A program made the position numbers and the translations under genes. A stretch of DNA of 64,000 bases from Podarcis filfolensis (lineage: Eukaryota): NCBI GenBank assembly GCA_964270895.1, contig OZ185444.1, one strand, 5' to 3'. The notes under the pieces were generated by a model. The model was not told the origin of the DNA, ran no database searches, and worked only from the letters and a program-made list of their open reading frames with translations. Below, one piece after another: positions 23,701 to 61,770 of the stretch; positions within the stretch are counted from its first letter, which is position 1; each line of letters opens with the position of its first letter.

Positions 23701-26700
23701 AATAACTTTGGTTGTAAGCATGTGCTCAAACTGAAGTCAGATACATAGTTACTGAGCATTTCTCCTTTGCCTGAAAATGCTGGCTGCCAAAGTGAGTCAT
23801 AAACTCCTTAATTTTCTAACACAGGAAGAGTTTTCTAACACTGTAATTACTGGATAAACTTCCTAGTTACTCTTTACCCGTAAAACAAAGTTATGTCATA
23901 AGAGTCGGAACCTCTCGGTACTCAGCAACGTATTGGGTATTTGACCTTCCCCTAGGAGGGAACTACCAGAGTTCTCCAATGCGTTACTGGGTGACACGGA
24001 GATCAATCTGTCAAATCATTCTAGTTCTTAAAGCAAATGATTTCATATTTTGTTCAGCAGGTTTTGAAGTTTACAGAGGATCACCTTCTGTTCCTAATGG
24101 CCTTTATAGCCAAATGCATCTTCCTGGCAGAGATTATCCTTCGGTGCAGTATCCTCACAGGGTAATTTTTTTGGAAGACTTTTGGCTTTGCAAAAGTATA
24201 CATGACCCTTGGTGGTGGTGTCCTGGATCCTGCTTGGGAATAAAGAACAAATACAGTACTTATTTGCACATAGTCAGGTTAATGGTGCTTTGCAAATTTG
24301 ACTTACCAGATTGAGAGGAGTATTGTAATGTATCATTTAGTAGGGACTAATTTTAATTGAAATGCCATCTAGAAAGGGCTGAATATATTCAGTGTTCATG
24401 CTTCCCATCCTAACTCTGAGAACATGACTTAAGTTTATATCGCTCAAGTCTATTGGGTTAATGCAGGCATTGCCAAACTGGGCCCTCCAGCTATTTTAGG
24501 ACTACAACTCACAGAATCCCTGACTAACAGGACCAGTGGTCAGGGATGATGGGAATTGTAGTCCCAAAACAGCTGGAGGGCCAAGTTTGGCCATGCCTGG
24601 GTTAATGTGTATGTCATGGAGCTATCTTTCTGAGTTCCCAGTATGCTGATGGATAGCTACAATGGTATTACATTTTGCTCCACTTTCAAGGAATATACAC
24701 TCATCTCAATTTAATAAAGCACATTCAGTCAGCTGTAGTGATACTGGAGCAAGGGTTGGCCATGTGAGGTGTCCAAGTGGATTATGACCCCTCCCACTGC
24801 TTTGAAGGCAGGAAAGATTTGATCATATTCTTTCTCCAGGAGTCTTCTCCCAATACTACTCAGGAGTGGGTGCCCCTGGAGCACTGCTCCTGACTGGAGC
24901 TGTTCTCCCAAAGGATGGAGATGCATAGTTGAGGTGTGCATCAAAGTGACATGCAGCCACACCACCCTAAAACATATACCTGAGGCCACTGGTTTCCCCA
25001 CCTGGAAGTATCCACAAAGGCATCAGTGCACTATAAAAACTGCCTTTTGAGCTCCCCTGGTCAGTCAACTAGTGTGCTTTTTCTCATGGCCATCACAAAA
25101 GTGTGGAGAATCTTGGAACTCAGTGCTGTTGCCAGCAATGACCACCGGTGTGTGTAACCGGTTCTCCTCATCCAACCCTTAAACCATCTCACCTCTCTGA
25201 GTGGGCCTGGCAGAAGCTGAATGTCTGGGTCCTCAAGATCAACATTCCCACATAATTGCCTTTACACAAAACAGTATCTTATGTCCTTCTGCCTAACTAC
25301 AGTAGGGGAAAGGCTTTAATTCAATCCTAGTGGATAAGGAGTTGCAATCTGTATTCTATGAGTCATTACACCTGCCAACACCATGACACACTGCACATTG
25401 GCAGCCTTGTCTATAAATGCACCAGATTTGCCATGTTAACTAGGCCACATTTCATACACCATTGCAAGTTGGACATACATGCTTCAGAATATATTTTTTT
25501 ACCTTCTAGCTATCCTTTTTTTCTTGAAAGTTCAGCTTTGGAAACCAGTAGGTCCAGGCCACACTGCTTTATTCTTTTCCTCCTCTTCTTCGTTTTTCGG
25601 TGCACACTCTGTCTCTCATGCTGTCTCATATTACTAAGTTGTTTCGGCATCACCTCTGCCTTGGAATAGAACCTCACCAGTAGAGAAAGGGGGAAAATCT
25701 GATCATGTTTCCTTCCTTCTGAGCAATAGGAGGAATCATAACCCACTTGGACACCTCCCACACCCAATAAGAAGTAACATTCATGGCGTGTACTGCACCA
25801 ACATTCTAATTTAAAAGTGTAGGTGCTTAATATGCATCCTGTTGATGCTGGTAGAAATTAAGTATGTTGGACTAACTACTTCTGATGTCTACTAAGCAGC
25901 AATAAACTTCAATGCTGGTACAATGGTACCTCAGTTTTCGAATGTCTCAGAAGTCGAATGTTTCGGTTTTCGAATGCCGAAAACCCGAAAGTAACTGCTT
26001 TGGTTTTCAAATGCTTTTTGGAAGTCGAACATGCCACACAGCTTCCATATTGAGTTTTCTTGAAGTAAATGCTTTAGTTTTTGAACGTTTCAGAACTCGA
26101 ATGGTCTTCTGGAACTGATTACGTTCGAAAACCGAGGTACCACTGTGTAGTAATTTTCTTTTCTCCCTCCCCTTCCCCATGAAGTAGATGTTATATGGCT
26201 GTAAATATTGTCTGGAGGTGCTTGACTAAACAGGAACAAATATTTGTGATCTCCTAGGATTTGAATTACCAGCAGAACTATAAGCGAGGCGGTATTAGTA
26301 GTGGCCGGGCAACCTCAAGAGGTAAGTTTACTTCGAACATTGCTTAAAATGCAGTTCTGTCCTAGATACTATGTAATACCTGAAATAAAACAATATAGGG
26401 CTGCATACAATAGTGACTGGATAATCGGATGTGCTTTCACCGCATAAGTTTTTGGGCTGGAATCAACTGTCTTATGCAACATATGGGCTCCATTGCTGCT
26501 CACAAGATGAATCTAATTCTTTCTGGCCCAGGAACATGATTTGTAGAGCTATTAAAAATTGATGATGGGGAAGGGGAGAGTTGTCATTTCAGTTGAGTTC
26601 TTAGCCTGCTCTCCTTGATGGAGGAGAGATGATCATGTCTCATCTCTTCAATCATTTGCCAAAGCAAGGAGGATCGGTCAAATACCCCGGCTTTCTAGGA

Positions 26701-29008
26701 GATGCTGGGATTTGTTCTTGTCTTATTTTTATTTAATAATTGGCTTTTAACTGTGAAAGGTTTTCTCAGCTGTGGTACTTTCACCATGAGAAATCTCCCT
26801 CTGCCTTCTCTGGTGGATGGGGAGTTGCCCATCACTGGGTGTCCTGTTCCATCTGTAAAGGAAACTTTACGGAAAGGCAGTGTTCCTGCTCTGCCTTCGC
26901 CATACCTCAGAGTCATATGAGCAAAAAGAACCAGAAAATATTCTCTAGAGCAGGGGTAGTCAGCCTTTTTATACCTACCGCCCACTAATGCATCTTTCTT
27001 GATGGTAAAATTTCCTTACCGCCCACCAGTGCTCAATGCAAGGAGGATTCATTTAGTGCCGTAGAATCCCCTACCACCCACCTAGAATCCTGACATGCAC
27101 ACTAGTTGGCATTCGGGACCAGGTTGTCAACCTCTGCTTGAGAGAATCCAAGACTAGCTTAAATAAACAGTTCAGAGCAGCCATTTCACTGTAACTATTG
27201 TCTCAAGCCAGTAGTAAGCCCACTTTATACACAGGTGATTTAAAGTAGGCCTAATGGTTTGTTCAGATTATCAAGGAGAAGTACTGAAGTTGCTCCAGTC
27301 TAGCCATATTAGCAGCTTGGTGCAGAGTTTATAAAATCCTTAAAGCTTCTGTATTTTAGGTTACAGACAAGAAAACAGACAGGAAGAGATTTGCTCATCA
27401 GGTAGAGCTCGAGGTAGAACTCGTGTTAGAGAATACTTCAGAAGAAGGGAATTGAGGAAAACTGAGAGAAATGTGAAGGAAGCAGAGTCTGAAAGCAGTC
27501 TTGTGACCACGAGGATGCATCAGTTCAGTTAGTGTTGATTAACAGTTCAGTTGATATTGGTAACTTGGTTTTCTATACTAAATAAACACACATTTATAAG
27601 ATATGTCCTTTCTTGGTAGTAAGAATATTGCACCCTCCAAAATGTGTTTTCTGTTAACTAGATATTTAAGTATTTGTCTTGATTTCCAAGGTGAGCATGT
27701 AGCCACTGCTTATTCACCATAAACATAATAGTAGAACTATTGCATTGTCATCTTAACCTCTGCTACTCTTTCTGGGTGAAGAGAAGCTTGAATCAATTCA
27801 ACGCTAAGCTTGCTGTGGAAGTGCACTTGTTACATATCTGACACACACATTGTTTTCAGAGTAAGGAGGTGGGAACGCTGTTTGAGTTAAGAGGAAATCT
27901 GGACTTGCAGCGTGCTGATAGACTGGCCCTTGTGTTTGCCATGAAGCAGCTCTGCTTTTTTTCAGAGCACAGCACCAACTGCTGTCAGTCAGGGAGCCAC
28001 TGTGTGTTTTGGAGGTTATCTTGCCATTAGTGGAGAAGATTTTTAAAATACTGAACAGATACTGGAGCAGATGAGCATGGGGTGGGGAGAATGAATAAAG
28101 CACAGCAACCAAAGCATGGCTGGCTTGCAGCAGCATGAGGAACACACTCAATCCAGAGGCTGTATATTTGTTGGTTGAGTAAAGCTGGAGTTGCTTTGCA
28201 GCTGAGAAACCCACACCCAAGCCTCTCTAACATTATATCCATCTCCACACTCACTTTGAAGAAAAATGATTAAAAACTTGTAAGAACTAGGTACAAGTCT
28301 AACTGGGATCTGTCTAGTCACTAATACACAAGGTCTTTTTTAACGACTGCTTGAAACATGCAAGCTTGAACAAACGAGTGCTAGAAATACTGAATTTAAG
28401 GTTACGTCAGAACTAACCATTGCTCATAATCTTCAACAACAGGATGGAGCGATTCTTCTCAGGTGAGCAGCCCAGAACGTGACAGTGAGACTTTTGACAG
28501 TGGGGACTCTGGGCAGGGTGACTCACGCAGCATTACTCCTGTTGATATGCCAGTGACGAGCCAAGCAACCACCTTTGTACCTGTGCACATCTATGCCTTC
28601 CCACAGCAAGTCAGAGCTGCCTTTTCGGCTAGTAGAACTTCTAACTTTACTCCTGGAACTCTAGACCAACCTATTACATTTGACTCCCTGTTACACAATC
28701 TTGGTGAAGCCTTTAATATCCATCTTGGTAGGTTTAGCTGTCCTGTGAATGGTACTTATGTGTTCCTCTTCAATATGCTGAAGTTGGCTGTGAATGTTCC
28801 TCTGTATGTGAACCTGATGAAAAATGAAGAGATTCTAGTATCTGCATATGCCAATGATGGTGCTCCAGATCATGAGACTGCTAGTAATCATGCAGTCCTC
28901 CAGCTTTTTCAGGGAGACCAGATTTGGTTACGCCTCCATAGAGGAGCTATTTATGGAAGTAGCTGGAAGTACTCTACATTCTCAGGATTTGTTCTGTATC
29001 AAGACTGA
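1423..29008 (+). CDS. CAPRIN2: Caprin-2 (RNA-granule protein with C-terminal C1q domain), whole spliced CDS span, ~1135-1149 aa
   Basis: 20 exons joined by hand through GT-AG introns with consistent phases (one ambiguous junction). Translation matches recalled Caprin-2: AYETYIDNGLICMKHKIRNIEKKK, LPKDPVLRRERLQDLMTQIQG, RGSVRG..RGGR, C1q tail ..HRGAIYGSSWKYSTFSGFVLYQD*. Confidence 0.97.
2247..2443. mobile_element. Penelope-like element terminal-repeat remnant with foldback (66-bp arms)
   Basis: Begins GTAGGTAGCCGTGT..GTCTGCCGTAGTCGAAAC, resembling recalled reptile PLE termini. Arms 2303-2368 and 2378-2443 match at 62/66. Second copy at 62224. Confidence 0.72.
2343..2376 (-). ncRNA. Minimal type I hammerhead-ribozyme core (probably decayed)
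   Basis: Minus strand reads CTGAAGA-A-GTGTG CATG CACAT-GAAA-GC-TC-ATAC; the stem I 5' strand is missing. Confidence 0.55.
2951..3013 (+). CDS. CAPRIN2: CAPRIN2 exon c2 (LKLEDYRDRLKKGEPLNQDQL)
   Basis: TTTTCAG| ... |GTAAGC; 63 nt, phase 0/0. Confidence 0.95.
3135..3236 (+). mobile_element. 5'-truncated RTE/BovB-type 3' end with 12-bp TSD
   Basis: GCCTGGCGTGCT..CATGGGGTC..AAGAGTCGGACA.GACT plus (CAA)n tail. TSD AAATCTTAACAA at 3123-3134 and 3237-3248. Confidence 0.8.
4580..4683 (+). mobile_element. L2-type 3' tail ending in (AAT)n
   Basis: TTGTGACCTGCCTTGGG..GAGACGGG followed by ~14 TAA units (4641-4683). Confidence 0.5.
5041..5127 (+). CDS. CAPRIN2: CAPRIN2 exon c3 (EAVEKYDEVIHNLEFAKDLQKTFSGLSQD)
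   Basis: TTACAG| ... |GTAAGT; 87 nt. Confidence 0.95.
5597..5835 (+). CDS. CAPRIN2: CAPRIN2 exon c4 (LLKAQRKAQRRE...RNEGV)
   Basis: ATACAG| ... AG|GTAAGT; 239 nt, phase 0/2. Confidence 0.95.
7068..7150 (+). CDS. CAPRIN2: CAPRIN2 exon c5 (VEDQMEQSSRYFWDLLEGSEKTVAGTT)
   Basis: TGAAG| ... T|GTGAGT; 83 nt, phase 2/1. Confidence 0.93.
8183..8371 (+). CDS. CAPRIN2: CAPRIN2 exon c6 (YKYLKDLISKLLNSGYFE...VSES)
   Basis: TCCTCTAG| ... G|GTAATA; 189 nt, phase 1/1. Confidence 0.93.
8836..8879 (+). CDS. CAPRIN2: CAPRIN2 exon c7 (PQMEPIQSEIQPQE)
   Basis: CTTCTTCCTAG| ... GAG|GTAAGT; 44 nt, phase 1/0. Confidence 0.92.
9591..10250 (+). CDS. CAPRIN2: CAPRIN2 exon c8, large low-complexity exon (FLNRHY...GPSE)
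   Basis: TTTGTATAG| ... GAA|GTGAGT; 660 nt open frame (track ORF 9609-10271). Confidence 0.93.
11189..11284 (+). CDS. CAPRIN2: CAPRIN2 candidate cassette exon c9 (DEKTDGVNEGGIDATSVGEPCKLPRSFENSLQ)
   Basis: TTCTTATTTTACATAG| ... CAG|GTTTGC; 96 nt, stop-free, phase 0/0; no recalled human counterpart. Confidence 0.6.
11447..11629 (+). mobile_element. tRNA-derived squamate SINE (Squam3-like), copy A
   Basis: tRNA-like head (GTGGTAGAGCA..GGTTCAATTCC), GCTGCTGCCAGTCAG core, TAAGGCAGCTTCCTA tail. Confidence 0.78.
11667..13326 (-). mobile_element. L2-clade LINE fragment, antisense in CAPRIN2 intron; broken ORF2 (EN C-terminal part + RT)
   Basis: Track ORFs 12990-13340 (PTHQVSHTLDLIF), 12596-13006 (SAAFD, GVPQGAILSPMLF, YADDTQLY), 11889-12671 (SRLDYCNSL, LHWLPV); (ATT)n tail. 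Possible TSD TAGTAGTAG at 11658 and 13327. Confidence 0.92.
13791..14370. mobile_element. Non-autonomous hAT-type DNA transposon (~580 bp)
   Basis: CAGGGGTCAGCAAACT...AGTTTGCCTATCCATG ends; flanks CTTTAATC / CTTTAACC (7/8 TSD). Confidence 0.75.
14481..14609 (+). CDS. CAPRIN2: CAPRIN2 exon c10 (APKPVHQ...LPKDPVLRRERLQDLMTQIQGTYNFMQ)
   Basis: TTTTATTAG| ... CAA|GTAAGT; 129 nt. Confidence 0.95.
14866..14941 (+). CDS. CAPRIN2: CAPRIN2 exon c11 (ESLLDFDKPS...DST)
   Basis: TTTTTAAG| ... G|GTAATC; 76 nt, phase 0/1. Confidence 0.93.
16110..16162 (+). CDS. CAPRIN2: CAPRIN2 exon c12 (PNEQLSSQNDFPEEPVQ)
   Basis: TTTTGTAG| ... CAG|GTAAGA; 53 nt, phase 1/0. Confidence 0.9.
16257..16392. mobile_element. 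hAT-type MITE, 136 bp
   Basis: TIR CAGGCATC...GATGCCTG, internally palindromic; perfect 8-bp TSD GCCTTGAG. Confidence 0.9.
17417..18603 (-). mobile_element. Putative internally deleted L1-like element
   Basis: Minus strand starts GGACTTCCGGTTTTTGCTGCCATGG and ends A-rich; more CpG than its flanks; weak ORF2-C-like peptide (LARYQLVIGW). No TSD found. Confidence 0.35.
18695..18790 (+). CDS. CAPRIN2: CAPRIN2 exon c13 (VAASPIALHG...SETELATPQ)
   Basis: TGACAG| ... CAG|GTTACT (weak donor; in-frame stop follows); 96 nt; resembles human ATSSPV...SETE. Confidence 0.8.
19386..19617. mobile_element. Tc1/mariner (Tigger-like) MITE T1
   Basis: TA|CAGTGGTACCTCGG...CCGAGGTACCACTG|TA. Confidence 0.9.
20208..20321 (+). 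CDS. CAPRIN2: CAPRIN2 candidate cassette exon c14 (TSVTNSQESENFSPPQSFYQISKEIAEVLKPKKSEISQ)
   Basis: GTCTCTAG| ... CAG|GTGAGT; 114 nt, stop-free, phase 0/0; no recalled human counterpart. Confidence 0.68.
20824..20973 (+). CDS. CAPRIN2: CAPRIN2 exon c15 (VPIPLSSE...GFQSPSP...APFQAVQI)
   Basis: TTTTTCCTTCAAG| ... ATT|GTAAGT; 150 nt. Confidence 0.92.
21530..21713 (+). CDS. CAPRIN2: CAPRIN2 exon c16 (VFKVNAPLPPR...TASTQTPPQC...DALPN)
   Basis: GTTGCAG| ... G|GTAAGG (phase 1); alternative phase-0 donor ATG|GTAATG at 21739. Confidence 0.88.
22040..22210 (+). mobile_element. Degraded CR1-like 3' end
   Basis: GTTGGCCACTGTGAGAAC..GGGCCTTTGGCCTGATTCAGCAG..CTTACATCCTTA tail. Confidence 0.5.
22658..22835 (+). 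CDS. CAPRIN2: CAPRIN2 exon c17 (YLVEGAVPVSNG...SRGSVRGTVRGGRS...GGYK), RG/RGG region
   Basis: Donor G|GTATGT at 22835 is clear; 5' boundary uncertain (22658 phase 0 or 22674 phase 1). Confidence 0.82.
24061..24161 (+). CDS. CAPRIN2: CAPRIN2 exon c18 (GFEVYRGSPS...QYPHR)
   Basis: TTCAGCAG| tandem acceptor ... AGG|GTAATT; 101 nt, phase 1/0. Confidence 0.92.
24464..24599. mobile_element. hAT-type MITE, 136 bp (internally opposite orientation to 16257 copy)
   Basis: CAGGCAT...ATGCCTG; perfect 8-bp TSD GGTTAATG. Confidence 0.9.
25921..26145. mobile_element. Tc1/mariner-type MITE T2
   Basis: TA|CAATGGTACCTC...GAGGTACCACTG. Confidence 0.8.
26258..26321 (+). CDS. CAPRIN2: CAPRIN2 exon c19 (DLNYQQNYKRGGISSGRATSR)
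   Basis: CTCCTAG| ... G|GTAAGT; 64 nt, phase 0/1. Confidence 0.92.
26951..27136. mobile_element. hAT-type MITE
   Basis: CAGGGGTAGTCAGCCT...AGGTTGTCAACCTCTG; flanks CTCTAGAG / CTTGAGAG. Confidence 0.65.
27360..27532 (+). CDS. CAPRIN2: Candidate alternative terminal exon of CAPRIN2 (C1q-less isoform, 57-aa Arg-rich tail)
   Basis: CTTCTGTATTTTAG| acceptor in the phase required by c19; open to TAG 27530-27532; AATAAA at 27581. Confidence 0.6.
27581..27586 (+). terminator. Candidate intronic polyadenylation signal (AATAAA)
   Basis: 49 nt after the alternative-exon stop, followed by U-rich sequence. Confidence 0.5.
28443..29008 (+). CDS. CAPRIN2: CAPRIN2 last exon c20 (WSDSSQVSSPERD...C1q domain...LYQD*)
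   Basis: CAACAACAG| phase 1; TGA 29006-29008; C1q motifs FSASRT, GRFSCPVNGTYVF, STFSGFVLY. Confidence 0.97.
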
Positions 29009-29320
29009 ATACTAATGTTTACAATAGATCTGCTCTAAACAATTTGGTGAAGGAAGGTGAAAACTGGGAAGACTCGTTTTGCACTGCACATTAACTGCTT
29101 GAAACACACCCACATAATTCTGATATGGTGATATGGTGAACTGTCTTGCTATGAGATGGAGTTGGGTCAGCACAAATGTGGCACTTTATCAGTTTTGATG
29201 TAGTCTTGATGGTAAAGCTGTGAATGTATGTTTGCTTTTCTCCCTGAACTGTAATTATCAGCTTACTACACTGCTCAAAATTTGCCTCAAGTCTAGGCTA
29301 TTCACAATGCCTTGTGCCTC

Positions 29321-29326
29321 AATAAA
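29321..29326 (+). terminator. Probable CAPRIN2 polyadenylation signal (AATAAA)
   Basis: First AATAAA I saw after the stop, ~310 nt downstream. Confidence 0.55.
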
Positions 29327-29382
29327 AAATATGCCTTAGTATCAATGTCTGTACTGCTGGGTGCACATGATCTCCTTTATAA

Positions 29383-29550
29383 GGGGGGCACATTCTATGG
29401 TAGAGTATATGCGTTGCATGCAGGAGATCCCAGACTCAGTCCTCATAACTCCCACCTAAAAGGATGCGGCTGCTGCTTGTCAAAGTAGACTTATAAAACT
29501 AGATGACCTGTCAAGGGTCCAACTCGGTATAAGGCAGCTTCATATGTTCT
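29383..29550 (+). mobile_element. tRNA-derived squamate SINE copy B (degraded)
   Basis: TGGTAGAG..TTGCATGCAGGAG head; GTATAAGGCAGCTTCATATG tail. Confidence 0.6.
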
Positions 29551-35578: not shown

Positions 35579-36503
35579 TCCCCTCAAAGTTGCTCGCAAC
35601 TGAAGATCATAGAATGGGATATGACATATTAGAAGCTGCAAGTTGCAGCTTTTATTTTTGGGAGGGTGGCTGGGCGGGCATTGCCCAAACCCCAGCGGGG
35701 CGGCAGAAAGGCGAAAGGCTGGGAGGAATCCCTAAGCACTCACGTAAGAGCCTTCGCCTTTTTGAGCATCCACTTTGCGCATGTGGTCTCTTGTCACACC
35801 CCTTTAAAACCCACGTCAAGTTCAACCTGTGAGGACCAGCTTGCTCCCTCTAGCTAGTACCCAAAAATAAGGAAGGGCCTCTGCCTATTTCAGCCTGGGA
35901 CTGAGGGAATCGCTGCCCAAAGCAGCTGGAGGGCTGCGCGCCACTCCCCTGTCCAGCAGGTGAGACACTTTCGGAGAGCCGAAGCGCCACAACCTGCCGG
36001 GCCAATGGATCCTCCAGCGAAGTCCCGGCAACAGGTCCTCGTAGCACCGGCCTCCCTGCTTTCCCATATCAGCTGGAAGCCAACAAGGGAAAGGAAGGAG
36101 AGAAGCCCCCGTTTGCTCCAACTACAGCGGATGCTCTCCGTAACAAACCATGGCCGCCCCCATCTTTAAAAAGTCCACAGCCGGGGGAGGGCGGGAGCGG
36201 CTGCTCTAGACCGCCCCCTCTCTCTTTCTCGGCTCGGCAATGTGTGTTTCGCTTCCGTACAACAACATGGCGCCTGCCATTCGGGCACCGCGAGAGAGTC
36301 GGGGAGGCGGAGAGACGAGAAGGAAAGCGCCCGGGGCGCAAAGCATCTTCTCCTTCGCGACAGCCGCGCTGTCGTAAACCGGTGAATGGCTCCCGTGTGG
36401 CGAAGGGGGAGAGGCGAGCTGGGGATTGTGTGCGGCGGCGGCGGCCCTTCTCTCTGAGGCGCCTGTGCTTCTCCCCCCACCCGCCCGCCGCCATCGGAGA
36501 GAC

Positions 36504-61770
<25,267 letters not shown>

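Follow-up and report, generated by a model that had tools for sequence, protein, structure and literature searches.

A hidden exon in the last intron of CAPRIN2 is spliced into RNA in two related lizards, as contigs from two sequencing runs confirm. We followed it up in a 64,000-nucleotide (nt) stretch of DNA from Podarcis filfolensis (GCA_964270895.1, contig OZ185444.1), here called the window, whose positions serve as coordinates throughout and which carries the 3' end of reptile CAPRIN2 on the + strand. The exon occupies 27360-27559. It lies between exon c19 and the last constitutive exon, which encodes the C1q domain, and inclusion of the exon would be expected to end the Caprin-2 protein before that domain.

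Splicing of the alternative exon into RNA

Sequencing runs were searched with 27300-27660 as the query, the share of a run being the fraction of query words present in it. Fourteen transcriptome-sized runs, from four studies and two organisms (A and B), hold 27-53% of these words, which is about what the alternative exon alone would contribute; genome-sized runs hold 71-100%. Four runs were compared with 23800-29400, X1 (organism A) and X2 (organism B) as contigs and X21 and X23 as raw RNA reads. Contigs of both X1 (depth 2.9) and X2 (depth 456), which come from different studies and from related organisms, contain the joint 26321->27360 with GT..AG at its borders; it is the junction that a preliminary description of this DNA had named as the check to be made. 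One contig of X2, 560 nt long and of depth 456, passes through upstream exons, c18 and c19 into the first 30 nt from 27360, and a 203-nt contig of this run covers 27358-27560 at depth 395, the adjoining intron contigs lying at depth 3-4. In X1, the alternative joint (2.9) coexists with the canonical joint 26321->28443, which connects c19 to the C1q exon (contig depth 8.7). No canonical c19-to-C1q joint was found among the X2 contigs, from which minor variants can drop; the alternative path dominates in X2, and the canonical path is not thereby absent.

We take X1 and X2 as RNA because both contain spliced joints and because exons exceed introns in depth by about 100-fold in X2. Both runs are recorded only as 'RNA?', and intron coverage in X1 is nearly at exon depth, as might be expected if the joints were artefacts arising from chimeric contigs, from a processed retrocopy in DNA runs or from the sequence of a foreign organism. 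We consider such an origin very improbable, since the joints fall exactly at GT..AG for c18/c19, c19/alternative exon, c19/C1q and alternative exon/C1q, they come from two studies and two organisms, the exon depth of X2 is about 100 times its intron depth, and X1 has the alternative and canonical joints together.

The elements of the alternative exon are listed below (in splice sites, a slash marks the exon border).

27346..27359, + strand: acceptor of the alternative exon, pyrimidine tract and AG (CTTCTGTATTTTAG, ending at 27359); read from the sequence; in use in both X1 (depth 2.9) and X2 (depth 456), where c19 is joined to 27360
27360..27559, + strand: alternative composite exon, 200 nt, purine-rich, single copy in the window; X2 contig 27358-27560 at depth 395, boundaries from joints and loose ends
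27360..27532, + strand: coding part, comprising a tail of 57 residues (split Gly codon counted) and TAG at 27530-27532; read from the sequence, frame intact in organisms A and B
27560..27565, + strand: donor of the alternative exon, GTAACT, a weak site (C at +5); supported by reciprocal loose ends of X2 contigs
27581..27586, + strand: AATAAA, candidate intronic poly(A) site 21 nt beyond the donor, followed by a T-rich stretch at 27604-27615; read from the sequence, with use suggested by X2 depths

Every sequence item of the preliminary description is present, namely the acceptor up to 27359 in phase 1, the 57 codons, the stop at 27530-27532, the AATAAA 49 nt 3' of that stop and the T-rich stretch. 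The split G codon together with window positions 27362-27529 (+) yields the 57 residues, and the genomic letters at the donor are ATATTG/GTAACT. The poly(A) hexamer followed by this T-rich stretch agrees with the hexamer and downstream U/GU-rich element looked for in an alternative terminal exon. Purines make up 64% of the exon (A+G), and this composition removes stop codons on both strands, so that an open frame is possible without selection on residues. A repeat or transposon origin was also considered and has no obvious support, as no second copy of the exon was found within the window.

By its sequence alone, this layout lies within chance and makes a weak case. Four AG sites in the 2.1-kb intron between c19 and the C1q exon open phase-1 frames of at least 50 codons. 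A pyrimidine-rich AG with a comparable phase-1 frame occurs in 60% of simulated introns, and about 6% additionally have a poly(A) hexamer. It is the RNA joints that decide whether the exon is real. That comparable layouts are not rare by chance also suits a different account, in which a young, lineage-restricted exonisation recruited cryptic splice sites in a purine-rich intron, has no selected function and is abundant in one sample by an accident of tissue or condition. The weak donor, the lack of a related tail among protein representatives and an exon divergence (3/203) not below that of the flanking intron (~1.6-1.9%) point the same way. However, X2 shows depths of 395-456 and no canonical joint among its contigs, far more than splicing noise would give, and the exon occurs in two organisms and, to judge by word share, in 14 runs from four studies. 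We regard exonisation without function as somewhat unlikely.

The constitutive exons on either side, and the canonical 3' untranslated region (UTR), are as follows.

24059..24161, + strand: CAPRIN2 exon c18, constitutive, upstream, its exact first base ambiguous by ~1 nt; joint 24161->26258 with GT..AG in an X2 contig (depth 456) and one X21 read, translation open
26258..26321, + strand: CAPRIN2 exon c19, 64 nt, phase 0 in and phase 1 out, donor GAG/GTAAGT; read from the sequence, with joints to c18, 27360 and 28443
28443..29008, + strand: last constitutive exon, linker and Caprin-2 C1q domain, stop at 29006-29008; 4OUL, Pfam C1q, and the joint 26321->28443 in X1
29009..29341, + strand: canonical 3' UTR, to just beyond an AATAAA-like signal near 29322; the X2 contig 29074-29341 stops there, remainder read from the sequence

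The frame at 28463-29005 (+) matches the Caprin-2 C1q structures 4OUL, 4OUM and 4OUS with E values from 4e-77 (4OUL) to 6.5e-71, is near-identical to 4OUL across 131 residues, and lies in an exon that also matches Pfam C1q (PF00386, E 3.5e-34). Judged by these matches, the downstream exon is the C1q domain of Caprin-2. It begins at 28443 after CAACAG and needs one base from the preceding exon for its first codon. Because it needs this base, in the frame that matches 4OUL, phase 1 of c19 is fixed independently, and the translation of c19 reads open in its phase. The joints in X1 and X2 bear out the proposal that a dedicated exon of the last intron is joined to c19 in the predicted phase and ends the frame before C1q.

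Composite structure, predicted escape from decay and a candidate poly(A) site

The exon also has a junction on its 3' side. Sequence past 27560 in X2 runs on into the first 15 letters of the C1q exon, and X2 contigs starting at 28442 are preceded by the final 13 letters of the alternative exon. The resulting junction 27559/28443, from the exon's own donor to the downstream exon, is that of a cassette exon, with 13-15 letters across the joint in one run (X2). Because its own donor at 27560 is spliced to the C1q exon at 28443, the 200-nt exon at 27360-27559 is a composite (cassette or terminal) exon. The preliminary description had called it a terminal exon; a stop-carrying exon is indeed in use, but it is not solely terminal, as its donor joins the C1q exon. 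Since the stop at 27530-27532 precedes that donor, the spliced and the cleaved outcomes encode one C1q-less protein.

In the spliced form, 27 nt separate the stop from the last junction (after 27559). Stops within 50-55 nt of the last junction escape nonsense-mediated decay (NMD) (PMC13187750), and by this rule the spliced form should evade NMD and its mRNA should be stable. A poison exon, meaning one that targets the transcript to NMD, is ruled out by the same distance, for it would need a stop more than 50-55 nt from the junction.

The depths in X2 also bear on where its transcripts end. A depth of ~395 reaches the 3' end of the alternative exon, compared with 97 on the C1q exon and 66 on its UTR. 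The contig at 27531-28471 has a mean depth of 17.2 over 930 nt against an intron background of 3-4; this excess corresponds to about 300x over ~40 nt and argues for an end near 27600, 10-30 nt past AATAAA. The position of AATAAA, 21 nt beyond the donor, predicts an end at that same place (~27600). From mean depths rather than read ends, we infer that about three quarters of the X2 transcripts end near 27600 and about one quarter splice onward; the AATAAA at 27581-27586 may be in use.

Directly past the zone where cleavage at the intronic poly(A) site is predicted, the two organisms differ in length: organism A lacks 39 nt of the window at 27603-27641, the gap falling between two ATGT direct repeats, and organism B keeps these 39 nt.

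The predicted C1q-less protein and its tail

The explanation that we prefer treats the exon as a composite exon that removes C1q from the protein, and we give it, as a whole, a probability of about 0.78. The c19 donor would pair with the 27360 acceptor in place of the acceptor of the C1q exon, and translation would continue for 57 codons into the alternative exon and end at 27530-27532. The product would retain the full Caprin-2 body and lose the linker together with the C1q trimerisation domain. Splicing onward would join the weak donor G/GTAACT (27560) to the C1q exon, which would then become 3' UTR; in the alternative route, cleavage would follow the AATAAA 21 nt beyond the donor. Seen directly were the two splice joints, a frame that is intact in three closely related organisms and, in one run, the predominance of the alternative path.

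Several points weigh against it. The production of a C1q-less protein is predicted from RNA contigs, contigs cannot reveal transcript ends or rare variants, and the RNA nature of X1 and X2 is, by their record, a guess. The two raw-read runs are uninformative for the exon: X23 is without CAPRIN2 reads, and the few reads of X21, at a depth of at most ~1, fall on c18 and the C1q exon, leaving the alternative exon uncovered. No poly(A)-tailed reads were seen at the intronic site, where X21 and X23 have no coverage. The tail found no match at E up to 0.001 among 1.84 billion protein representatives, a search that is weak as a negative, given that isoforms are hidden in clusters and that 56 residues need more than ~41 bits; it found no candidate in a word-indexed protein collection in which only proteins of 31-98 amino acids were eligible. 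The window exon differs from organisms A and B at three places, each time with a changed amino acid (I>N, V>G, T>A), in a comparison that covers three close relatives (the window species and organisms A and B).

These three substitutions lie at 27390, 27474 and 27506 and are accompanied by no indels and no new stops. They amount to a divergence of 3/203 (1.5%). As far as the compared sequences indicate, the frame is kept across the three closely related organisms with no sign of residue constraint, and because every substitution relative to close relatives is non-synonymous, the peptide may escape selection. Of the 56 tail residues, 13 are Arg, 9 Glu and 2 Lys; there is one RG dipeptide and no RGG, and a Pfam search with the tail gave no match. 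The view of the tail as an RG-rich, RNA-binding or nuclear localisation signal-like segment, advanced in the preliminary description, finds no support in these counts, in the missing homologue or in the non-synonymous differences; an RGG/RG-box RNA-binding tail is rejected on the single RG, the zero RGG and the lack of a Pfam family. Nothing in these data shows a role for the tail.

A reading that coincides with the preferred one except for the role of the tail is that the exon acts at the RNA level only, as a switch of 3' end or 3' UTR or as a means of removing C1q. The tail would then be a by-product, constrained only to stay open to within ~50 nt of the donor for escape from NMD. The used frame stops 27 nt before the donor, the other two frames 100-156 nt before it, and the frame is open even though all three differences from organisms A and B change a residue. 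A tail without family or homologue in Pfam and the protein searches fits as well, and purine richness can hold a frame open without residue selection. On the other hand, three substitutions are too few to gauge selection, and a charged, Arg-rich tail could work through its composition and not its exact sequence. We place this RNA-level reading slightly short of even odds.

Within the composite-exon explanation, the consequences for function can be predicted by analogy with work on human Caprin-2. Human Caprin-2 1-935, which has no C1q, does not rescue Wnt reporter activity after knock-down, and the middle region of Caprin-2 still binds LRP5 (PMC2528581). Trimerisation of C1q is required for LRP5/6 phosphorylation and dispensable for binding (PMC11480233). 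The short lizard form would accordingly be expected to lose C1q-dependent Wnt/LRP5/6 activity, being Wnt-inactive and possibly competitive, and would probably keep the RNA-granule functions of the Caprin body. A more far-reaching proposal is that the main Caprin-2 product of some lizard tissues is C1q-less, with the frame kept open so that the stop sits no more than 50 nt from the donor and is safe from decay. CAPRIN2 could in that case switch, without mRNA loss, between a Wnt-competent trimer and a form that resembles Caprin-1, belongs to RNA granules and carries a new Arg-rich tail. Were the exon old and shared with birds or mammals, it would represent an overlooked regulated switch in a factor of Wnt signalling and of lens and erythroid differentiation. 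We hold this proposal to be improbable.

The C1q domain is what distinguishes Caprin-2 from Caprin-1, and Caprin-2 requires it to affect LRP5/6 phosphorylation (PMC2528581, PMC11480233). That a natural exon, dominant in at least one sample, removes this domain suggests that much of the Caprin-2 in that tissue is inactive in Wnt signalling; C1q-less Caprin-2 may serve in RNA granules alone, or may be a competitor of the full-length protein. The layout illustrates how a stop-carrying exon can evade NMD twice over, through where its stop lies and, probably, through the poly(A) site close by. The exon refines the annotation of CAPRIN2 and is of modest interest for Caprin-2 biology.

Other features were seen in the window. 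A repeat-like stretch, likely a SINE-type element, occupies 26792-27165 of the last intron, shortly before the alternative exon; its depth is raised in all four runs (to 311), and loose ends lie at 26945-26951 and 27033. The intron between c18 and c19 contains a palindromic hairpin at 24470-24600, both strands of which match the miRNA precursor family mir-5408 below threshold (51.5 bits, cut-off 90). Each of the four runs covers the hairpin to a depth of thousands; the joints at 24524/24550 link opposite strands, and the loose ends agree poorly. Its appearance is that of a highly abundant repeat resembling a miniature inverted-repeat transposable element, rather than a single-copy gene. At 26044-26146, raw RNA reads of X23 lie on one strand only at a depth of ~14, and 69 of them leave at 26146 with one continuation (agreement 0.95); the segment contains a tRNA-like GGTTCGAA-type motif, and the signal is probably that of a transcribed repeat copy from elsewhere. 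Farther downstream, 36000-37100 is a CpG island (GC 0.58) with an ATG-initiated frame from 36501 within the open reading frame 36426-36956. We take this frame to resemble the first exon of importin-8 or importin-7, which would presumably fit the CAPRIN2-IPO8 neighbourhood of human 12p11.

Comparison with known systems

Among the papers searched, none dealt with this exon, with a C1q-less reptile form or with reptile Caprin-2 isoforms. In humans, a short CAPRIN2 isoform without the C1q domain, EEG-1S, was reportedly described by Aerbajinai and colleagues in 2004. Like the predicted lizard product, it would have the Caprin body and lack the C-terminal C1q. Protein searches with the lizard tail found no sequence relation to the human C1q-less form. 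The Caprin-2 deltaC construct (1-935) of Ding et al., 2008 (PMC2528581) is truncated at a point close to that of the lizard form, before the linker and C1q, and predicts that Wnt enhancement would be lost and LRP5 binding by the middle region retained. It differs in being an artificial human construct without the 57-residue tail.

Caprin-1, the paralogue without C1q, and Caprin-2 are reported to have non-redundant functions (PMC11480233). The predicted isoform would resemble Caprin-1 in domain content, with HR1, HR2 and a basic C-terminus and no C1q. However, Caprin-1 ends in RGG boxes, whereas the lizard tail has no RGG and one RG.

The switch between secreted and membrane IgM is an example of competition between a donor and a poly(A) site. 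Composite terminal exons and other stop-carrying exons that are followed by an intronic poly(A) site and escape NMD form a known class (Vlasenok et al., 2026, PMC13187750). The lizard exon resembles the composite terminal exons of this class in carrying a stop and in having a 5' splice site that would compete with a poly(A) signal tens of nucleotides downstream. It differs from the class in that its spliced form is already predicted to be decay-safe: with 27 nt between stop and junction, escape would not depend on the poly(A) site. What we describe is a newly documented exon of an ordinary, already known kind and not a new mechanism.

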